Assembly: GCA_965112735.1 (NCBI GenBank)
Contig: OZ218950.1
Span: 6,324,001-6,388,000 of the forward strand
DNA from: Phaeosaccion multiseriatum
Taxonomy: Eukaryota; Protista; Ochrophyta, other classes
Direction: 5' to 3'
Length of the DNA stretch: 64,000 nt
Shown: positions 10,214 to 64,000 of the stretch, piece by piece
Numbering within the stretch: the stretch's first letter is position 1
Layout of the letters: every line of letters starts with the position of its first letter
Notes under the pieces: model-generated
What the model was told of the DNA's origin: nothing
The model's database searches: none
Seen by the model: the letters and a program-made list of their open reading frames with translations, nothing else
Made by a program: the position numbers and the translations under genes

Positions 10214-13247
<3,034 letters not shown>

Positions 13248-51003: not shown

Positions 51004-52695
51004 ATGAATGTTATCCAGGAGATCAAGCGAATAAACGAGCGGGAGCTCAAGGAGGGTATCTCTGAGAGCGCCTCTTGGCACACCAAATATGAGAGCAGCG
51101 CCTGGGTCTATGTCGGGGGGGTGCCATACGAGCTGACTGAGGGAGACCTCCTCTGTGTGATGAGCCAGTGGGGAGAGGTGGAGGACATCAACCTCGTCCG
51201 AGACAAGGAGACGGGCAAGAGCAAGGTATGCGTGCAGGCACCGGCGGGAGGGAAAATGGATCGCGCTCGGAGGTATAGGGTGGAGCTTATGGGGTTGTGG
51301 CAGTGCCTATGGGCGGTACTACTCCTCCTCCTCCTCCTCCTCCTCCTCCCCCTCCCCTCTTCTCAATGACTTCCGCGAGCCTCAACTCTTCGTCCTCCCT
51401 CCGGCGCACCGATTTCCCTGCTCTATGCCCGCTCTGCTTCGCCCCCCCTCACTCACTCCCCCCTCATTCACCCACTACACTCGCTCGTTAACGTATCCAT
51501 CCAGGGCTTCGCCTTTCTCAAGTACGAGGACCAGCGCAGTACCGTACTGGCGGTGGACAACTTTAATGGCGTGCAGATCCTGGACAGGACCATCCGAGTG
51601 GACCACTGCGAGAAGTACAAGCTGCCCAAGGAGGTGAGAGTGGGAGGTCGTATACGTTACAGAGGGGAGAGGAAGTAGCAGTAGCCTTTGCTTGGCAAAT
51701 TGTGGTATAATTGCGGTATTATATGCCAAGGGCAAGGGAGCAGTGAGCAGTGGTGACTCCCCGGTTTGGACAGTCGACTTTCTAAGCGTGGACTGGTCAT
51801 CTCTCCTCTCCCACCTCTTTCTCACTCTCCCATCTCCATCTCCATCTCACTCTCCGTCTCTTTTTTGTCTCTATCTCTACCTCTATCTCTCTCCCTGTCT
51901 CTCCCTCTCTCACCCTCTCTCCCTCTTCTCTTTCTCTCTCTCTCTATCTCTCTCCCTCTCTCTCCCTCTCTCTCTCCCTCTCTCTCCCTCTCTCCCCCTC
52001 TCTCTCCCTCTCTCTCTTCCTCTCCTTCCACCTCTGTCATGAATCTGCAGCTGAAAGACAAGGAGGAAGCGGCCGAGGAGGCGGGCACGGGAGACGGGGT
52101 GGTGCGATGGACACCGGGACACGCTTACGAGGGGAAGAAGATTGTGGGGGATCACAGCCTCAAGAAAGGTGTTGATTTGTGGGACAAGACTGCGGCTGAG
52201 GAGGGAGGGGAGAAGAAGCATGGCAAGAAGAGGCGGAGGGGGGAGGGAGGGGGAGGAGGGAGTGAAGACGGCGGGAAGGAGAGCAAGAAGGAGAAGAAGG
52301 AGAGGAAAGAGAAGAAGAAGGAGAAGAAAGAGAAGAAGGAGAAGAAGAAGGAGAAGAAGGAGAGGGAGAGCGGCGAGCAAAGAAGGGAGGGCGACGGTTA
52401 CCTCCGAAACGGCAGAGGAAGCGAAGGAGGGTGGTCTGGGGGAGGGGGTCGAGGAGGGGGCCGAGGAGGGGGCCGAGGAGGGGGGGGTATGCCCGCACCG
52501 GAGGCAGAGCTGGGTAACATCCTCAGGCCGAGAGACGCGGGACCTGTGGGCGACTGGAGAGGCATCATGTCGGAGGGTACAGGGAGAGGGGGGAGGGGAG
52601 GAGGACGAGGGGGAGGGGGAGGAGGACGAGGAGGGTTCTCGAGCCGAGGCGGAGGAGGAGGAGGAGGGAGGGGGGGAGGGAGAGGCAGGGGGTAA
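51004..52695 (+). CDS. RBMX2: RES-complex RRM protein RBMX2/Ist3/Snu17
   Basis: Exons 51004-51225, 51505-51633, 52051-52695. [53 protein letters not shown]. Lys/Glu-rich and RGG tail. Confidence 0.92.
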
Positions 52696-53142
52696 GCCCC
52701 GAGCTGTATTGGTAGGCGGGTTGGTAATAGGGGGGAGAAGGTATTTGTATTTTTACATTTCTAGTCCGAGTCCCCCAAAGAAAAGAGAGGGGTAAAGGAC
52801 TAAAATACTTGCCAAAGGTTAATCCCAACTATTGTACTCAACTTTTAAAATGGGCGACGTCTGATGTGCGCCGAATTAACCAAAATCAATCGATCGATCA
52901 TCATAAATAATAGAAATAGTTCTGTCCCCTGTCCCCCTCTTCTTACTGTACTTCCTTCTAAATAATGTAAATTGTGTGCCTCACTCGAAATCAGCGAACT
53001 TGACGCGTAAATGGGGCAAGCACACACACACAGCTTTGCTTTGTTTTACTTGGCCTTGCCATACTTTACTCTGTTTTTCTTTGCTCTGTCCTCTCGTCTG
53101 CTCTGGTCTGGATCACCAACTGCTCTGATTGTGTAGTCTCTC

Positions 53143-53398
53143 TCAGTCGAGGAAAAGTACCACGTGGTCAGGGAAGCCAAGGTCTCTTAGATGCTCGTAC
53201 ATGCTCTGTAGAGCCCATGATTCACAAACGGGAAAAGCGTCGGGGGTAGAGGCGTATGGGTAGGGGTGGAGGAGGGGCGGTATGGATGAGAGGAGGCAGG
53301 CAAGCCAACAGGATAGCACGAGGGTCGACAGCCGTAAGGGGCATCACCCGCAGCAGCAGCAGCAGCAGCAGCAGCAGACATACAGATAGAAAAAAGGC

Positions 53399-53479
<81 letters not shown>

Positions 53480-53504
53480 GGATAGACAGACAGACAGACA
53501 GACT

Positions 53505-53551
<47 letters not shown>

Positions 53552-53576
53552 GGATAGACAGACAGACAGACAGACT

Positions 53577-53638
<62 letters not shown>

Positions 53639-56272
53639 GAGACAGACAGACAGGCAGACAGACAGACACACAGACAGACAGACGGACAGACAGATAGACA
53701 GACAGACAGAGACAGGCCACAGTCATAAAACCCCATTCAAGACCACGTAACACCAACGAAAGGTTCCCCTCCTTCGTTGAGTCAGTCCCTCCCTCCCTCC
53801 TTGCCTTGTACTCACGTCGGCAAAGGGCGGCGGACCCGACACGATTATCACCGTGTTTCGGGAGTGCTGCTCCGGCTCCGGAGGGGCCGCCGAGTTCTCC
53901 CTATCCTTCTCCTTCTTCTCCTCCACCTCCTCCTCCTCCTCTTCCTCCGCCTCCCCTCCCTTCGACGACATTAGACGCCGCATACTCCTCTGCACATCTG
54001 CGTTGTCACTCCCCATGTCCCGCATGATCATCGATCGGAGAATGTTCCACGCCTCCTTGTCCTTCTTGCTCTTGCCGATACCCAGCCCTCCTAGGAGAGA
54101 GTCGACCTTCTCCAGCTGCTCCTCATGGGGAAGCTTCCGCATACTGTCGTGGTGCTTCTCCCACTCGAGGCCCTCCAAGGGCTTGGCCAACATGGTGGCA
54201 ATGTCGTCCTGTTGGAGCAGTCGCCATTCGTTGTGTAGTGTGTTTTTTTTTGGGAGGTGGTGGTGGTGTGTTGATGAGAAAGAGGAGCGAAAGACGTAGG
54301 CGACTCGCATGTTAGCTCAAAGAGGGAAGGGAAAGGGATGGTTCGGAAGGACGAGGGACGCGCAGACCATGGAGCCATCAAAACATTCATACAGAGCGCA
54401 CGGACGCACGCACGAACGTACACACGCACGCACACATGTACGCATACACAAACGAGGCGCCACTCCCTCGCTCCTCTCCCCCCCTCTAATTCTAGTGACT
54501 TGCCCGAGAGATCCTTCCGACAATGCATTGCTCACGCTGGCGTCGGGCCTCCTGAGCTGCCAAAACAACTGCCGCTAGCCCCTGCTGCCGTTGTTGTTGC
54601 TGCTGCTGCCCTTCCGGCGGCGGCGGTGGTGGTACTGAGGCAGAACTCAAAGGAGAGTGCAGCGGACTCTGCGTCGGGGTGATCTCAATCCCATCCCCTT
54701 GGTCGCCTCGGATAGACACACTGGAGTGGGTCCCTACCCCTGTCCCTGACTCTGCCCTCCCGCCGCTGCCTGTTGCTGCCCCTGCCCCGCTCTTGCTGCC
54801 GACCCCTGCCTGCATGGCGACCGTAGACCAGGAGGAGGGGATGGCGGTCTGGCTCAGGCCGTTGTTGTGGGGCATGCTCACGGACTGGGGCCTCGTGTAA
54901 TCCTTGGGATCAGCAAGATTCGCGGTCAGAAGACCTCCTCCTGCCTCCTCCTCCTCCGCCCCCACCTCGGATACCGCAGCTCTTTTGGTGTCTGCGAAGG
55001 AGGAGGAGGAGCACGAGGAGGAGGAGGAGGAGGAGGAGGAGGAGGAGGGGCACGAGGACGAGGGGCAGGAGGAGGGGGGGGGAAGAGGAGGAGGAGGAGA
55101 AGGAGGAGGAGGAGGAGGTGGTGGTGGTGGTGGTGGAGGAGGAGGAGGAGGAGGAGGAGGAGGAGGAGGAGGAGAAGGAGGAGGAGGAAAAAGAGGAGGA
55201 GAAGAGGAGGAGAAAGAGGAGGAGAAAAAGGAGGAGAAAAAGGAGGAGGGTTGGGCCAAGGGAAAGAGAGAATGAGCCTGACCTGACCTGATCCCTAGCG
55301 CCTCTGCACCCTATCTGTATCAGTCAGTCAGTCAGTCAGTCAGTCAGTCAGTCAGTCAGTCAGTCGTCCCCCTGAGTCTGTCCCTGAGCCTGAGCCTGAG
55401 CCTGAACCACTTCATGCTCTTCGTCTCACTCACCCTTGGCGCAGCTAAGGCCGAAGCAACTCGACGCTGGCGGGGCCTCCTCCGAGCTATCCGACAGTAA
55501 AGCAATCAAAAGCCGGGCAAAGCGCCGGGGTGGGGTGGGGTGGGGTGGGGTGGGGCGGTTAAGATGGTTGTAACGTGCTAAGGTGCGTAAGGATGGTGAG
55601 GCGCTAAGGTGGTATGTGACGCGTAGTACACATAACAGGGAAGGAGAGAGAGAGAGATGGATGGAGATCCATCGCTCCCTTCTCCCCATCCCTGCCTGCC
55701 TCCCTCCCTCCCTCCCCCTCTTGCCCTTTCTCCTCACCATCCCACACACACATACACACACAATTACGTAATTCTTAAGTGGATTCCCGTAAGTCAACAT
55801 ATACATCTCCTCACCATCCAACGAATTGTCTCCAGCCCCCGACGAAGAAGCTCCCCTTCCCGTCTGTCCCACTGCCCCCCTTCTTCTTGAGCTTCTTAGG
55901 CCCGTGCTTGTCTCCCTCGCTGCAGTAGACAGAGTAGAGGAAGGAGTCCTTCTCAGCGTCTGCTACCATCTCCTCCAGCTCCGCCAGGCCGAAAACGTCT
56001 CTGCGGAAAAGGGAAAAAAAATGGACGCAAGAGGGACAAAGAGGGAGAGAGAGCGACAGAGAGAAACAAAGAGGCAAGCAAGAGACAGAGACCAGAAACA
56101 CAAACACGGCGACAGGAGCACTGTGTTGATGAGTTGAGCCCCTTTGCCGGTGAGCTTTGTGCCCACCCTCACCCCAAAGCAGCTGGACCAGGAGGATAAG
56201 GCAGACGTACAGAAAGCGCGAACGAGCTGAAACTCAACACCCACACAGCAGGCGCACGCACGCACATACACG

Positions 56273-56316
<44 letters not shown>

Positions 56317-59300
56317 CACGCACTTTTTTGACCTCGTCTGCCAAAGCAGCGTGAGGGTCTCAACCGCATTATTGAAAAAGCTGTCCAGCCGCTTCTGCTC
56401 CTCCTCCTCCTCCTCCTCCTCCTCCTGCTGCTGCTGCTGCTCCTCCTCCTCCTCCTCCTTCTCTGCCATTTCCACATCCTTCTCGTCCTCCCTCTTCTCC
56501 TCGGGCATGGCAGAGAGCCCTGACGTGTCGAGTAGTCCACGTGGCACACGGACCGTCGACCTTGTTGTGGCCATGGCCTTTGCCCACGGCCCAGGCAGCG
56601 CGCCTGGCTCCTCCTCCTCCTCGTCCTCCTCCTCCTCCTCCTCCACCTCCTCCTCGTCGCCCTCGCTGGTCAAGGAGCTTTGCTTCTTCAGTAGCTCCGC
56701 ACCCTTGTCTCCTCCTCCTCCTCCTCCTCCTCTTCCCTGTCCTCCCTCGATGAGCGTGGAGGTACTGGCCGCTGCTCTTTTCCAGAGTGACGCTGCGCTT
56801 CTCACCCCCTTCCTTCCCGTCTCGCTCCCAGCCTCCCCCCAGCGGAGACTGCGCTTCTTGCGAGCCTCGATGTTGACGATAATATGCTGCAGCATCGGGG
56901 TGACTCCCGTGCCTGAGGAGGGATGGCAGTGCATGAGGGGAATGGCAGTGGTTGCGAGGGATGGCAGTGGATGCCGGAGGAGTCAATGGATGTTCGATGG
57001 ATGACAACTAAAGAGGGCTCAATAGCCTACCTCCCCCGCCGAATGGCCTCATTCCCTCTCTAAAGGCCCCCCTCCTCCCCTCTCTCCCTCCCTCCCTCCC
57101 TCCCTCCCTCCCTCACCGGCGGCGAGCATGTAGACATGCTTGGCATTGTGCTGCAGCTGGGGGATCTGGAACGGGCCCTGCACGCGGATGGTGTTGCCCG
57201 CCTAGGCAAGCAGTTGGTGATACAGGGCAGAAGTTGGTGATACAGCGGCAGTTAGTGATATGCAGCACGAGTTGATGATTTGGTGATACAGCAGCAGCTG
57301 GTGACACAGAAGTTAGTGATACAGAAATTTGATGGTGCGGCAGCAGTTCGTCATACACAAGGATAAACACCCATTGACTTACTAACCACCCACCCACCTT
57401 GAGCTGCTTGAAGGCCCTGCTCATTTGGCCTGTGGGGTAGAGCCGTACGTAATAGTCATAGACATCGAAACCATTGAGCCGCCGCCGGCGGACAGGTGTG
57501 TAGGACCTCTGGATCACAGCGCCCTTGTGCACGATGCGGAACTGTGAGTACGACGGTTGGTGATACGGATAGGGAGATAAGCCAGTGGGTGATCACGGGG
57601 AGAAAGGCGAGAGGGGGGGGGGTCAGTCAGCAAAGTCAGCCAAGGGAAGAGCAGGGGGAAGGGGGAGGAAGAAGCATGGGAAACAAGCCAACCAAACACC
57701 AAGCCGCAAGTTGCAAGCCCCCTCTCTCGTCCTCTCTTCAACTAAATGATCTCTCCTCCTCCTCCTCCGCCTCCTCCTCCGCCTCCTCCTCCTCGATTCA
57801 TTATTCCAATCAAATCCAATACACCGCACCTTCATATACGTCCCATTGCTGAGGCGTGGCAATCGGTCATCCATCCCCGACCGCAACGACAGCTGCAGAA
57901 TGGGGCTCTCCTCCTCGCTCGGCTCCGGAGAGGAGGTGCGGTTGACCTGAGTCTTGCTCACCACGACGAACTTGGTGAATTGGAGCTCCTGCGCGAAACT
58001 TCTGGAGCGACGGCTTGACCGAATCCTGTGGGTGGGAGTGGGGAAAGGAGTATGGGTGTGGTTATTGGGGTGGGGGTTGGTGAGGGGAGTAGAAGAGGGA
58101 GGGAGAGGGGAGGGGGGGTGTGATGTGTGTGAATGTTGGTGATACAGAAAGGCGCGAAGACTTGTGCGATGCGATGCGCGAAAGACAGGTGGTGGGTGGT
58201 AAAGACGACGTACTTGGCAAGGATGCTGTGCTTACTGACGCCCCCCTCCTCCTCGTCAGCCTCCTCGACGTCAGCTGCGAGCTCGTGTCTGCAGAGGAGA
58301 GAGTGAAGAGAAGGCAAAGAATTAGTATCTCACTCACGCACTCACTCACGTACCCACTCACTCCCTCTGCCTTGGTCCCTCTGCCCCCTCCCTCCCTCCA
58401 TCCCTCCCCTCCCCTCCCCTCCCCTCCCCTCCCCTCCCCTCCCCTCCCCTCCCCTCCCCTCCCCTCCCTCCCTCCCTCCCACCTCTCCCCTCCTCCCCCC
58501 TCCCACATACCTCTCAAGCCAGCCCACGACATTCTGGTTGATGGCTGCCCACGCTGTGGCAGAGTGCTTGTGTGGATAGGTATACACGCCATGCCCCATG
58601 GAGCGCAAACCGCGTACTTCCTGCGTCACGTCGAGCCCGATGCTCTCCTTCAGTATGCGGCTGCCTCCGGGGTGCACCTTTGGCAGTTGGCGATACAGTG
58701 GTACGGCAGTTGGTGATACAGTGGTAAATTCAAATTGATCGAACGTGAGATTGTATGGTACGTCAGTTGGTGACAGATTCGCTCGTCGATTTCACTTGGC
58801 AGACAGGCGTCCGAATGATAAGCAATGTTGCGTACCTTCATGAAGCCTCCGATGTCGACGACCATGTCGTTTACAACCACCCACTGAGGGTAGGAGAAGT
58901 GGGGGGGGGGACGGGGCGGGATAAGCACAGAGGGTCTGGGAAGATGCTGTGTGTCGTGTCGTTGTCTTCTTCTCCTCTCTCTCTCCCCGCCCCGTTCCGC
59001 CCATCCTATTCGTCCCTCCTCTGTCTCTACGATACCCTTTTGGTCGCGCGCGCACACACACACACACACACCTTCTCTCCGTTGAAGACTTTGTCATTAA
59101 ACTCCTCCCAAGAGTAAGCCCTCCCCCCCATGAGCAGTGCATCTTCGATGGTGCCTCCCTTGGCGTGGCTCTGTTGGTAGCGAATCTCCTTGTGGATGAA
59201 GACCAGCAGGTACGCACACACAAAGATCCAGTACAGGTAGCTCTGTGTGTGTGTGTGTGCGTGAGCGTTCCAAGAGAAAAAGGGAAACGGGCGACGTATC

Positions 59301-62300
59301 GGCGGGACCAGTCAGTACAGCTACAACACTGGAACTGGCAGAGAGAGAGGCCCGAAGCAGAGCAAGCAGACAAGAAAACCACATGGGACGAAACGATGGC
59401 AGTGGATTTCACCTGTACTCCTCTGTGTACTTGGGTCTGTACTCACCTTGATGGGCCCAAAGATGTCTACATCGAGTCCGATGGAGTCGGTGCCGCTGCC
59501 GTTGTCGATGCCCTCAATGACAATGGTGCTGTCCTCAGGCGAGATGAGAGTGAGTCCGAGATAGACTTGGTACAGCCCCGTCACGAGCATGAGGCGGCCC
59601 GCGATCCTGTGCATCCACTGTGTTTTGTTCGTTGGCGTCAGCAGTTCATTCGTTCGCGTCAGCAGTTCAGTTCAAGACGAGGTGGGGAGGGGGATAGGGG
59701 AGTTAGGCTTACGGTTAGGGTAAGCTCCCTCTTCTCTCTCATCTCTCCCTTTCTCTCCCTCTCCCTCCACCCGTCTCTACTTCCTTCCTTCCCTCCATCC
59801 CTTCCTCCCTCTCAATGCACGCACTAACCTTGTTGACCATATGAAACCGACTGGTGTTGGTGCCGATCCACTTCACACCCCTGTTCTGTATGCCCAACAT
59901 GCGAATGCTGCCTGTGACAATCTGCCCAACGATGGCAATGAGCATGGCAAGGCCAATCTTGCCGTGGCGGGTTCGAAACCCAGTTGAAGACGTGGCGATG
60001 GCGCTAATGGCGAGAGGGATGGAGGCCTCCGCGACGAAGCTCGACAGGACTTCGTGGATCTCCAGCCAGTTAGGCATGTTCTTGCAGTAGCGGGCCACGA
60101 ACACTGGATGGTGGTACGGTGTGGGGTGTGGGTGGGGGGGTGAGTTTGGCAGATGTGTATGTACTTGGGCGTGTGTACGTGGCGTGCAGAGGTGAAGGGG
60201 TGGGGATGGCAGTGGATGATGTTATCCTTATCTTCTCTTCTCTTCGGCCTTCCCTTCTCCAGCGCTATACGACCATATTCGCTCCCCCTCCCACCACCAC
60301 AACAACAACACAACAACTCCCTCACACACCAGCACACACACACTCACTCACGCTCCCTTACACCCACACATATCCACCCTCACCCACCTTAACCTACACA
60401 TACACTCACATGCACACACCTACCCACATCCACACCCACCCACACCTGCACCCACACCCACCCACATCCACCCCCCCATCCAGCCATTCACCCACCCACC
60501 CACCACCCACCACCCACCCACCTGAAATGGGCGCTGCAATTCCCCACGCCAAGAGCATGAGTATCCCGTGCAGCGTGAAGAAGGGTGAGTCGTCTCCGCC
60601 CCTCACGGTGTTGACACCCCCCCCTCCAAAGAAGTCTGCGTCCCCGGTGCCATAGCTCGACGGTGAAAGAGCGTGCTGCCCAAATCGATTCTGATTCAGG
60701 CTCCATATAAAAGGTACCCTCTCCCCGGCTATGAGGGCGGTGTCCTGGGCAGTGTCTCCTGTATCCAACAGCCGTGAGAAGGTCGCCGTGACCCAGCCAT
60801 CGTCCCCTTCTCCTTCCTCAGTGAAGAAAGATTGTTCGAGGATGTGTTGGGTAACGTCCACGGGAGGGAGGGCGTTGGCGATGGCTCTTCTGTCGGTGAC
60901 ATTGACCTTCTTGGCACCGGTTTCCTCGTCGATGGTGTGCTCTGCAATGTAAATGTCGGCACCGATCATCTGTTTAGAGAGAGAAAGAGAGAGAGAGAGA
61001 GAGTGTGTGTGTGTGTGTGTGTGTATGAAGGGGGGGGGGGGGGGGTTAGATCTCGTCCGATTCATGCCTCTATGCCTGTCTGTCTCGCTCATATTAGCCT
61101 ATTTGCCTCACGTAGGCCCATCCATACCACGCCTCACAATGGCAGAGGACTGCAAGACACTGCAATACGAGCCACCGAGGCATACACGGAGAGAGAGAGA
61201 GCAGAGCAGAGACAAGAAAGGGAAACGAAACGCAAAGGGAGAGACACAGAGAGAGAGAGCGACGGAGCGAGAGGAGAGGGAGAAGAGAGAGAAAGGAAAG
61301 AGAGAGATACAGAGCCAGAGACAGAGCCAGAGAGGGAGAGGGAGAGAGAGAGAGCGTGTGCGAGAGAGAGGGATGCAAAGAGAGAGTGCTCTTTGCCTTA
61401 CCCTGTTGCTGCCGATGCCAAAGCCCATGTAGCCGTTCTCTGCAATGCCCTTCATCCTGTACGTGAAGGTGATGACGTCGCCTTCGATGGACCAACGCAC
61501 TCTGTGAGGGCGGGAAGGGGACGAGGAGGGAAGCAACAAGCAAGGAAGAGGGAAGAGGGAAGGAAGGAGGGAAGCAACAAGCAAGGAGGAGGGAGGGGGG
61601 AGGAGAAACGAGGAAAGCCACGAGCAAGGAGGGGGGAGGAGGGGGTATGGAAGCAGCAGACAAAGAGGAGCAAAGCAACAAGCCAAGGAGGGAAGGGGGA
61701 GAGAAGGAGTGGTGAGCAATAGAAAAAAGGTCCTTCGTCCACCTGAGAGTAAAGGCAATACTCCGGCGAGAAGCCGATGGCAGTGCATGGATGGTTGCGT
61801 CAGTGGGTCGGTCCTCTCGTGGGAGGAATTGATGGCAGTGGACGGTTGGGTCAGTCCATCGGTCCTCCGTTCTCCCCTTATGCGTCGAATCTCAACACTT
61901 TTCTCCCTTCCCCTCCCCTCGCTTCCCTCCCCTCCCTCTTCCTCCCCTCACTCACTCAAAAGTATCCTCCGAAAGCGTTGCCCCCCCCTCAATCACGAGA
62001 CTTGCGTTACAGGATGCTTGTGCAATGAGCGGCGACGAGTAGAAGGCGTTCTCGAAGCCATGCAGACCCACTTGCCCCCCGCTAGTCTCCCCCTCCGCCG
62101 CCTGTAGCGCCCGTAAATAATAGCCTCCTCCTCCTCCTCCTCCTCCTCCTCCTCCTCCTCCCGCCACCGGTTCGTACTCGTCCTTGTCCTCCCCTCCTGG
62201 GTATTCATCCGCGTCCTCCTCCTCCGCGTCCTCCTCCTTCTCCTCCTCCTCCTCCTCCCTCACAGGGTCGGCGTTATCCGTCATCAGTTTGGCCATTTTA

Positions 62301-63367
62301 TACCCTATGGCACCTGCGGTCAAGTTGTTCTGTGGTGGAGAGGACGGGGGGGGGGGGAAGGAGGGAGGGAGGGAAGGAAGGGCCACTTATCAGCCATCCT
62401 CTTAATTCGGTGTGAGTCAGAACTCCAAATTCGTCTAGGGGTGCCCTCCCTCCCCTCCCTCCCTCCCTCCACGCTTCACACCTGGTGCGAATGCCAGAAG
62501 CGATCTCCGCGGCGTGTGGTCTGCCAAAAGGTCCTCCTCACCGACTCTCTGAAGAGCGGAGAGAGGAAGAGCGAGGGGTTTGATGCACTGGCTCTGCTCT
62601 CCGCCAAGCCGCCTGTTGGAAGGGGGGGGGGGGGGGGGGGGGTGGGGATGGTGGGGTGAGTGAGGGAGAGAGAGACAGGTAGGAAGAGAGATAGATAGAA
62701 CGAGAGAGAGTAGAGAGAGAGGACAGAAAGAGAAAGACAGTTAAAGAGAGAGGGGGGGGAGAGCACTAAGAGGCAAACACACACGCGCGCACACGCACAC
62801 ACACAGCGGCCCGTCGCTCCTCACCGGGCAGGGCCTCGAGAGAGTCCACGTCTCCGTACACAGAGCGGAGCAGCTCTGTGGGCCGGGGGAGGGGGGTGCC
62901 AAGACGGAGGAGGGGTGTCAGGTGTCAGGACAGAAGAGGGAGGGGAAGGGGTGTCAAACAAGTGATAAAAACTGGAACACTCAAAGCCGAAAACTGAAAC
63001 TTGAAAAACCGAACCCGAATAGTTGCGCTGTCTTCCTTCTACTCGTGCATCGTACGACACTGGAGTTTCGTCTCCCCCTCACCTGCCACCCCGGGGTCGG
63101 AGGTGACGTCATCGAAATCAGCGGCTCTGCTGAGGCCGAGAGCGGCTCGGGCGTCGTTGTAGGAGGGGATGGCGACGTCTCGCGCTCGCTGGATGTCCAA
63201 CACGGGAGCGTTGAAGGAGGTCTCTGTGAGCAGGTCGTCGACGGTGTGGCTGTGTTTTTGGGGAGAGGAGGGAGAGGACGGGAGGGGAGGGGAGGGGGGA
63301 GAGATGAGAGGAGAGAGAGACACACATACAGAGAGAAGTGACAGGGGAGAGGGAGAGACAGAGAGAC

Positions 63368-63442
<75 letters not shown>

Positions 63443-63858
63443 AGAGAGGAGAGAGAGACAGAGATTGAGAGAGAGAGAGAGACAGAGACAGAGAGAGAGA
63501 CAGAGACAGAGAGAGATAAGAGGAGAGAGAGACAGACAGAGAGAGACAGACAGAGACAGAGATAGATAGATAGAGAGAGAGAGAGCACGCTAGACAGAGC
63601 AACGCACAGCACATACTCAGAGCGAGAGGGCGCCCTTGCCAGCGCGGCCCTGGGCCTCCGGCGCATGTTGGTTCCCCACGCACAGAGTGCGCCGCTACTC
63701 ACAGATCTGTCTCGTACATGACGCCACCCACCATCCCGTTGAGAACGGGATTGAGGCCGTGAGTGGCAAACACGTCGTCGATGAGAGAGGGGTCGAAGGA
63801 AGAGCGGAGAGGGACGGGGTCATAGCTGGACACCGGGGACAGGTCCTCCTTCAGCAGC
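53143..63858 (-). CDS. Multidomain membrane oxidoreductase: animal-type heme peroxidase, DOMON, cytochrome b561, cytochrome b5, FAD/NAD(P)H reductase; 5' part beyond the window
   Basis: Peroxidase [25 protein letters not shown] (62480-63858). [29 protein letters not shown] (60670-61501). b561 LHG/IHE/RHG/MHR (59450-60580). b5 [16 protein letters not shown] (58214-59130). Reductase RSYTP, GQMS, GPF, AGTGVTPM, SGPP..LRDLGF (53143-57990). Inter-domain splice phases that were checked are compatible. Confidence 0.8.
53400..53712. repeat. (GACA)n microsatellite in the last intron of the oxidoreductase gene
   Basis: About 310 bp of nearly pure gaca repeats. Confidence 0.95.
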
Positions 63859-64000
63859 CTAAGGGGGTGGGGGAGGGATGTACATGTGCATGAAAGCACG
63901 AAAAGTGGTGGTCGCGAAGGTGGGGGTAATGGTGGTGGTGGTGGTGGTGGTGGTGATGGTGGTGGTGGTTGTGGTGGTGGTTGTGATGGTTGTGATGGTG

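Follow-up and report, generated by a model that had tools for sequence, protein, structure and literature searches.

A gene for a fusion of five domains

The 64,000 nucleotides from the alga Phaeosaccion multiseriatum that are analyzed here (GenBank assembly GCA_965112735.1, contig OZ218950.1, positions 6,324,001 to 6,388,000 of the forward strand; "the window" designates this entire stretch) contain, on the minus strand, a gene that is predicted to join in one polypeptide, from N- to C-terminus, a peroxidase-family domain, a DOMON domain, a cytochrome b561-type membrane module, a cytochrome b5 and a flavoprotein of the cytochrome-b5-reductase type. An earlier reading of the locus (the original prediction, made by a model from the letters of the sequence and without database searches) had proposed one spliced gene with this order of domains, and that proposal holds: 17 exons bounded by GT and AG are in frame, and the gene has collinear relatives in which the order is the same.

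The DNA of the window is of the intron-rich eukaryotic type (GC content ~57%), and microsatellites abound in it. The exon model was reconstructed manually from the sequence and then checked by script. It runs from exon 1 (E1), whose start at 63858 follows a pyrimidine tract and AG, to a stop codon at 53145-53143. E1 to E17 (63858 to 56324) have GT donors and AG acceptors throughout, mostly behind pyrimidine tracts, and compose one open frame of 1115 residues, with compatible phases and canonical splice sites at all 16 junctions; what remains of the NAD domain, up to the stop, is carried by three further exons, E18 to E20. E1 begins in the middle of the peroxidase domain, and the 142 bases upstream of it are a CAC/CAT-type repeat of intronic appearance. 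The 5' part of the gene (~390 residues, judged from relatives) consequently lies beyond base 64000.

The last intron (53400-53720) is mostly a long (CTGT)n microsatellite in the minus-strand reading; other introns are filled with similar CT-rich and GGGAGG-type repeats (for example at 63300-63600), and a purine-rich repeat of the GGGAGG type at 58375-58499 is also intronic in the gene model.

Relatives

An exhaustive HMMER search with exon E7 (60969-60522) retrieved 31 proteins. The closest is only 43% identical, and the protein of this organism is therefore not in the library that was searched. Pfam places An_peroxidase, DOMON, Cyt-b5 and FAD_binding_6, in that order, in P0005, P0010, P0028 and P0014 (1633, 1623, 1637 and 1268 amino acids, respectively); it finds An_peroxidase, DOMON and Cyt-b5 in P0029 (1514 amino acids), and DOMON, Cyt-b5, FAD_binding_6 and NAD_binding_1 in P0015. 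A word-based protein search contributed a single new member, P0043 of Tribonema minus (1460 amino acids), for which precomputed assignments list all four domains. P0005 is encoded by an uninterrupted, intron-free open reading frame (ORF) of 4.9 kb (L002:3576-8477) on a gene-dense environmental contig of 10.5 kb and 60% GC; for P0029, a contig of 5.6 kb has a single ORF that is preceded by in-frame stops; P0010 is the ORF of a Trinity transcript from Tribonema gayanum (EukProt). (The ORF for P0005 is flanked by other genes on both strands, one of them, ~1.2 kb upstream, encoding a VKOR domain.)

The family is small. Its architecture is seen in xanthophytes (T. minus and T. gayanum), in Chrysoparadoxa australica, in the present alga and in environmental sequences; the members from T. 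minus and Chrysoparadoxa are annotated proteins. The statement of the original prediction about the absence of functional characterization is supported: the literature on this domain combination yielded no paper that describes or tests the architecture, only papers on CYBDOM proteins, on peroxidasin and on unrelated subjects. The architecture is already public only as unstudied predicted proteins, and the function of the family is uncharacterized.

One gene or several

Why should these domains be assigned to one gene? The single-gene reading, with its order peroxidase-DOMON-b561-b5-reductase, is supported by the predicted gene structure and by the relatives: the phases fit, domain boundaries lie within single exons, no ATG is available to a separate reductase gene, and the relatives are uninterrupted. 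Three boundaries are internal to exons (peroxidase/DOMON in E5, DOMON/helix 1 in E7, helix 5/b5 in E10), and these links therefore require no splicing assumption. E5 (61956-62329), for instance, is a continuous ORF in which the peroxidase domain ends (its final ~22 residues), an acidic/Gly-rich linker follows and the strands of the DOMON begin; peroxidase and DOMON are thus physically joined, however the transcript may be spliced. The b5 and the reductase are connected through E13 (58214-58288; phases AG|A and AA|G), which encodes an acidic linker, and no ATG that could start a separate reductase gene is found upstream of the FAD domain in E13-E14.

Comparison with the relatives gives the same answer. 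In blastp searches the spliced product matches P0010 with 38.6% identity over 674 residues (E 5e-139), and P0005 with 37.9% over 686 residues plus 39.9% over 188 residues of the peroxidase domain; P0029 is matched in a single high-scoring segment pair (HSP) of 902 residues that extends from the peroxidase through the NAD domain. HSPs to P0010 and P0029 cross E13. Seven relatives yield tblastn matches to the minus strand from 63860 to 53146, and these are collinear. Chance as the origin of the domain matches and of their collinearity is excluded by these alignments.

The motifs quoted in the original prediction are all in place ([68 protein letters not shown]), and its TF-GA|A-VRWS junction is that of E5 with E6. 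One detail of its splicing has to be corrected: NVVGWLER, which had been taken for a micro-exon of 23 nucleotides, belongs to the b5 exon at 58677-58511, of which it forms the 3' end without a break.

The peroxidase-like head

The C-terminal third of an An_peroxidase domain (62264-63858), delimited by Pfam and by alignment to the relatives, is encoded by E1 (63858-63703), E2 (63249-63083), E3 (62875-62825), E4 (62612-62482) and the first 66 nucleotides of E5. Pfam recognizes it in the E2 piece (E 3.2e-8, 33 bits against a cut-off of 25) and, at 0.045, in the E4 piece; the relatives score 118-212 bits. The window holds only about the last 190 residues of the domain (Pfam positions ~360-530 of 530), which align with the peroxidase C-termini of P0005, P0028 and P0010. 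By its sequence the head belongs to the peroxidase-cyclooxygenase superfamily; the family as a whole presents a mix of possibly competent and clearly degenerate peroxidase heads, the particulars of which are taken up below.

DOMON domain and membrane module

The DOMON domain (60640-62011) spans the 3' part of E5, E6 (61501-61402) and the 5' part of E7, and scores 4.7e-7 and 0.007 against the Pfam model on exon pieces. Its candidate haem ligands are the Met of RMIGADI (codon 60969-60967) and a His preceded by Gln (codon 60675-60673), each conserved in all ten aligned members of the family.

The b561-type module of five helices (59192-60582) follows directly, in the 3' end of E7, E8 (60103-59829), E9 (59617-59447) and the 5' part of E10 (59242-59072). 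Each of four successive helices has a His at its start (FFxxHG, WLxxH, xxHGKIG and KxxHR), and the four are conserved in the ten-member alignment. The codons of the outer pair, on helices 1 and 3, start at 60570 and 59966, and those of the cytosolic pair, on helices 2 and 4, at 60056 and 59611; the arrangement is that of HYP1 (PMC10784544). A fifth His (codon start 59843), also invariant across the family, is situated in the cytosolic loop between helices 3 and 4, which is long and conserved (59841-59890; G-I-x-N-x-x-x-K-x-x-G-T-N-Y-x-x-x-H-x-x-N-K). It may be on this loop that the fused b5 docks; we know of no counterpart to the loop, with its fifth His, in the plant CYBDOM proteins.

Relating this part of the protein to solved structures required a family profile: phmmer found nothing among Protein Data Bank sequences with a homologue's DOMON-b561 part. 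The profile matches cytochrome b5 (8e-7), the DOMON of DBH (8e-5), Dcytb (7e-4) and an Arabidopsis b561 (7e-3). An AlphaFold2 model of the DOMON-to-b5 stretch of a homologue (pLDDT 80, pTM 0.63) has a beta-sandwich, five long helices and a b5 fold. The beta-sandwich resembles the DBH DOMON (Z 15.8) and the cytochrome domain of CDH, in which haem is bound by Met and His (Z 14.3); the best natural matches of the helical part are Arabidopsis b561 (4o6y, Z 14.3 over 168 residues) and Dcytb (5zlg, Z 14.2).

By hydropathy, four helices of the present protein rise above threshold and the fourth in order lies just below it; most relatives have five. The full-length relatives begin with segments that look like signal peptides. 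Five membrane helices together with such N-termini support, as a model, the topology put forward in the original prediction, with peroxidase and DOMON domains outside and b5 and reductase in the cytosol.

Cytochrome b5 and reductase

The cytochrome b5 (58511-59119) is encoded by the 3' part of E10, E11 (58883-58836) and E12 (58677-58511), and its candidate haem-ligand His codons are at 58674-58672 (HPGG) and 58566-58564 (HKHS); VHPGGS and HKHS are conserved in the alignment. All the haem ligands nominated originally for DOMON, b561 and b5 are accordingly retained in ten of ten aligned members. The Pfam model Cyt-b5 matches the exon piece at 0.006 and relatives at 1e-7 to 1e-10, and in the homologue model the fold matches b5 structures with Foldseek TM values of 0.75-0.80.

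Beyond the E13 linker comes an FAD-binding domain of the cytochrome-b5-reductase type (57117-58025), in E14 (58025-57830), E15 (57541-57398) and E16 (57201-57117), with the motifs RSYTP and GQMS and a Pfam FAD_binding_6 match of 5.8e-6 on the E15 piece. The NAD-binding domain (53143-56912) comprises E17 (56912-56324: GTGVTPMLQ, an acidic insert, then LTLLWQT), E18 (from 56000, with an uncertain donor near 55815), E19 (54208-53816, ending in SGPPPFAD) and E20 (53205-53143, ending in LFLD and the stop); the C-terminal FLD is conserved in relatives. E17's acidic stretch, of 190 residues, is taken as coding in this model. RSYTP, QGPF and GTG(V/I)TPMLQ are conserved in the ten-member alignment, and the FNR motifs RxY(T/S), GxxS/T and GTGxxP are all present. 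A profile of the family's flavoprotein ranks NADH-cytochrome b5 reductases first (1.3e-17 to 1e-12), then nitrate reductase (1e-10) and CYB5R4 (1e-9), with the plant-type FNRs well behind all of these.

Comparison with known systems

The nearest parallel is with the CYBDOM proteins (HYP1 and CRR of Arabidopsis, FRRS1/SDR2 of animals). HYP1 is a five-helix CYBDOM protein with three haems, the DOMON haem being held by M90 and H174; it conducts electrons outward, from cytosolic ascorbate to Fe(III) and Cu(II) (PMC10784544). The extracytoplasmic Met/His DOMON domain, the five-helix b561 core with its two His pairs, and the predicted orientation (N-terminus out, C-terminus in) are the same, and the AlphaFold2 model matches CYBDOM clusters of plants, fungi, nematodes and chordates in the ESM Atlas (TM 0.47-0.55 by query). 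What is different is at the two ends and in one loop: here a b5 and an NADH-b5-reductase-type flavoprotein are attached at the cytosolic end and a peroxidase-family domain at the outer end, and the long loop between helices 3 and 4 carries its family-specific His. The attached b5 and flavoprotein point to NADH, instead of ascorbate, as the donor.

The second parallel, with DUOX, was drawn in the original prediction, and survives as a matter of overall logic. In both, one chain combines an extracellular An_peroxidase-family domain at the N-terminus, a membrane conduit with two haems and, in the cytosol, an FAD/NAD(P)H dehydrogenase; the peroxidase domain of DUOX is likewise often degenerate at its haem-binding residues, and DUOX1 chains are among the head's sequence matches. 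The parts, however, are different: the membrane module here is b561-type and the dehydrogenase cytochrome-b5-reductase-type, neither of them NOX-like, and there are an extra b5 haem and, outside, an extra DOMON haem. Pfam finds no Ferric_reduct, FAD_binding_8, NAD_binding_6 or EF-hand in six relatives. On its predicted domains the fusion is not a member of the DUOX/NOX family, and the resemblance is convergent and architectural only.

Two further systems resemble portions of the protein. A b5 followed by an FAD/NADH b5-reductase module in one chain is found in Ncb5or/CYB5R4 and in the C-terminal half of nitrate reductase. Those b5 + b5-reductase fusions are soluble, and CYB5R4 has a CS domain between the modules, whereas the pair in question is tethered to the membrane, has no CS domain that could be found, and is set apart by long inserts in the NAD domain and by an SGPxGF motif. 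The cytochrome domain of CDH is a DOMON-like beta-sandwich with a Met/His-ligated b haem (structural match, Z 13-14) and serves as a mobile exit port through which electrons from a flavin reach an acceptor outside; CDH, a soluble secreted protein, has its flavin on the same side as the cytochrome, whereas here the flavin is across the membrane from the DOMON haem. The fusion has the tested features of CYBDOM proteins, of cytochrome b5 and (Cys aside; see below) of b5 reductase.

Pairs of these modules also recur separately in the ESM Atlas: DOMON + b5 + FAD_binding_6 in ciliates (995 amino acids), An_peroxidase + DOMON (752 amino acids) and Cyt-b5 + b561 (328 amino acids) in Mucoromycota, and An_peroxidase + DOMON + Cyt-b5 in a cluster of 179 members. 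Recurrence of this sort argues for a real exchange of electrons between the neighboring domains.

A proposed electron exporter

The protein is best read as a trans-membrane electron exporter made of a single chain: a CYBDOM conduit in which a fused NADH/FAD/b5 feed takes the place of the ascorbate donor, and which is capped by a peroxidase-like head. We assign this reading a probability of about 0.7. The cytosolic flavoprotein would take hydride from NAD(P)H, most likely NADH to judge by its family, onto FAD, and would pass electrons on, one at a time, to the cytochrome b5 fused with it; that cytochrome's haem would reduce the cytosol-side haem of the b561-type module; and the electron would then cross to the outer b561 haem and on to the Met/His-ligated DOMON haem on the extracytoplasmic side. 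From there, two exits can be envisaged: 1) the fused N-terminal peroxidase-family domain, provided that it binds haem in this copy; 2) an acceptor outside the cell, chelated Fe(III) or Cu(II) for instance, as is the case for the plant CYBDOM proteins. The chain from NADH through FAD, b5 and two b561 haems to the DOMON haem is well supported as an inference; the gene model, the assignment of the domains, the conservation of the ligands and the predicted topology come from the analysis itself, whereas cofactor loading, the direction and path of the electrons, and the acceptor we infer. Transfer from DOMON to the peroxidase domain is, on the residues discussed next, not well supported.

Several findings weigh against the proposal or against parts of it. 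1) The Pfam model Cytochrom_B561 (PF03188) matches neither the window pieces nor the six relatives. Because that model is silent, the b561 identity rests on weak profile matches, on the fold and on the pattern of His. 2) The NAD domain has two long low-complexity or disordered inserts, which occur at the same two sites in all close relatives, the T. gayanum transcript ORF included (the divergent P0014 has a compact domain without them), and the CGPPxM motif (53816-53845) is SGPPPF here and SGPxGF in all relatives, so that the GPP core is kept and Cys has become Ser; inserts and Cys-to-Ser change together may mean lower or altered activity. 3) For the joins between E18 and E19 (55815 to 54208), which fall where a disordered insert interrupts the NAD domain, an exhaustive GT-AG search offered just one solution, which has a middle exon of 55 nucleotides and is unconvincing. 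4) No RNA run was found for Phaeosaccion multiseriatum; the four sequencing runs that cover the stretch contain its introns as well. 5) The peroxidase head has a catalytic site that is degenerate in much of the family and is, for this copy, almost entirely outside the window.

This last point needs to be set out residue by residue. In myeloperoxidase (MPO) the residues of catalysis are Gln91, His95, Arg239, Asp94, Glu242, His336 and Asn421, with His95 distal, Arg239 catalytic, His336 proximal and Asn421 hydrogen-bonded to the proximal His (PMC3533774). All of the corresponding positions except that of Asn421 map upstream of E1, beyond base 64000. The proximal His is kept in two of six relatives (P0043 and P0014) and is replaced by W in P0005 and P0029, by Y in P0010 and by L in P0028. 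Three of five relatives (P0005, P0014 and P0043) still have the distal His, the exceptions being P0028 and P0029, and the catalytic Arg is kept in all but P0014 (5/6); P0043 thus retains distal His, Arg and proximal His, and P0014 both His. The Asp and Glu that link haem covalently in animal peroxidases are absent from all six relatives. At the position that we take to be that of Asn421, checked only against the spacing of the alignment, the window encodes Asp instead of Asn ([10 protein letters not shown], codon 63197-63195), and the relatives show D, E or T.

Where, then, would the electrons leave? The exit may be the DOMON haem itself, the protein being a reductase of metals or small molecules (Fe(III) or Cu(II) chelates, monodehydroascorbate, or a partner enzyme) and the head a non-catalytic scaffold, adhesion or regulatory ectodomain. 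We consider this a serious possibility, somewhat short of an even chance. The haem-poor peroxidase-homology domain of mammalian DUOX has a role of this scaffold, adhesion or regulatory type. The peroxidase active site is degenerate in four of the six relatives, and HYP1 and CRR reduce ferric and cupric substrates at the outer face (PMC10784544). But the domain has been kept across lineages, and the complete His/His set of two relatives (with the Arg as well in P0043) argues that some members are catalytic.

It is rather unlikely that the protein is instead an NADH-driven extracellular haem peroxidase or oxidase, in which the DOMON haem would pass electrons to a peroxidase haem, either for the reduction of external H2O2 (in the manner of cytochrome c peroxidase, which cytochrome c supplies with electrons) or, through a ferrous haem and O2, for the production of superoxide or H2O2. 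The head always adjoins DOMON in this family, the fusion of An_peroxidase with DOMON also occurs alone, in the Mucoromycota cluster, and is joined to Cyt-b5 in the 179-member cluster, and the sites of P0043 and P0014 are those of possibly competent enzymes. Opposed to this are the replacement of the proximal His in four relatives, the losses of distal His or Arg in P0028, P0029 and P0014, the absence of the covalent-link residues throughout, and the fact that this copy, whose own deciding residues are beyond the window, is most similar to P0005 and P0010, both of which lack the proximal His. The original prediction of a wire "into a heme peroxidase" is not borne out in that form. Were the head of this copy nevertheless to bind haem, the protein would be a self-contained, NADH-powered extracellular peroxidase or oxidase, its peroxidase haem connected across the membrane to cytosolic NADH by FAD and four b haems, and DUOX would have a convergent counterpart assembled from CYBDOM and b5/b5-reductase parts; we think this improbable.

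That two or more neighboring genes have been wrongly joined (one for peroxidase-DOMON-b561-b5 and a separate one for the reductase, for example) is a very remote prospect: the link from b5 to reductase does need splicing, and the b5 exon, read through its donor, meets a stop ~60 codons on, but the phases fit at every junction, E13-E14 offer the reductase no ATG, and the relatives hold the whole chain in uninterrupted ORFs and one transcript, with single HSPs spanning the junction.

What the exporter would add

To our knowledge, b561 and CYBDOM conduits rely on a soluble donor, ascorbate, and trans-membrane oxidoreductases that are fed by NADH or NADPH use the ferric-reductase fold of NOX and FRE. 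The family of electron exporters proposed here would represent a third way: a conduit of the b561 type equipped with an NADH/FAD/b5 feed of its own, an exit haem in DOMON and a peroxidase-family head, holding FAD and four, perhaps five, haems. If it works in this way, it would connect cytosolic NADH with the cell surface through a compact wire that is genetically encoded; it would mean that b5 can replace ascorbate at the cytosolic haem of b561; and one could think of it as a natural experiment on peroxidase-like heads, placed repeatedly, as in DUOX, atop trans-membrane exporters of electrons. Acquisition of iron or copper, wall chemistry and the handling of reactive oxygen species are candidate physiological roles.

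Other features of the window

No tRNA genes were seen in the window. A second HPGG-like match in the DNA, at 10802, was rejected: it is part of an unrelated ORF resembling short-chain dehydrogenases, and the 14-mer that it shares with the b5 exon is a chance coincidence. The minus strand at 10214-10802 has exon-like ORFs with the look of NmrA/short-chain dehydrogenases ([12 protein letters not shown], [11 protein letters not shown]). On the plus strand, an ORF at 51766-52795 has a Lys/Glu-rich stretch followed by RGG/GGRGG repeats, and resembles the last exon of a gene for a Gly/Arg-rich (GAR/RGG-box) protein; it stands tail to tail with the fusion gene, its end ~350-450 bases from the fusion gene's stop codon.

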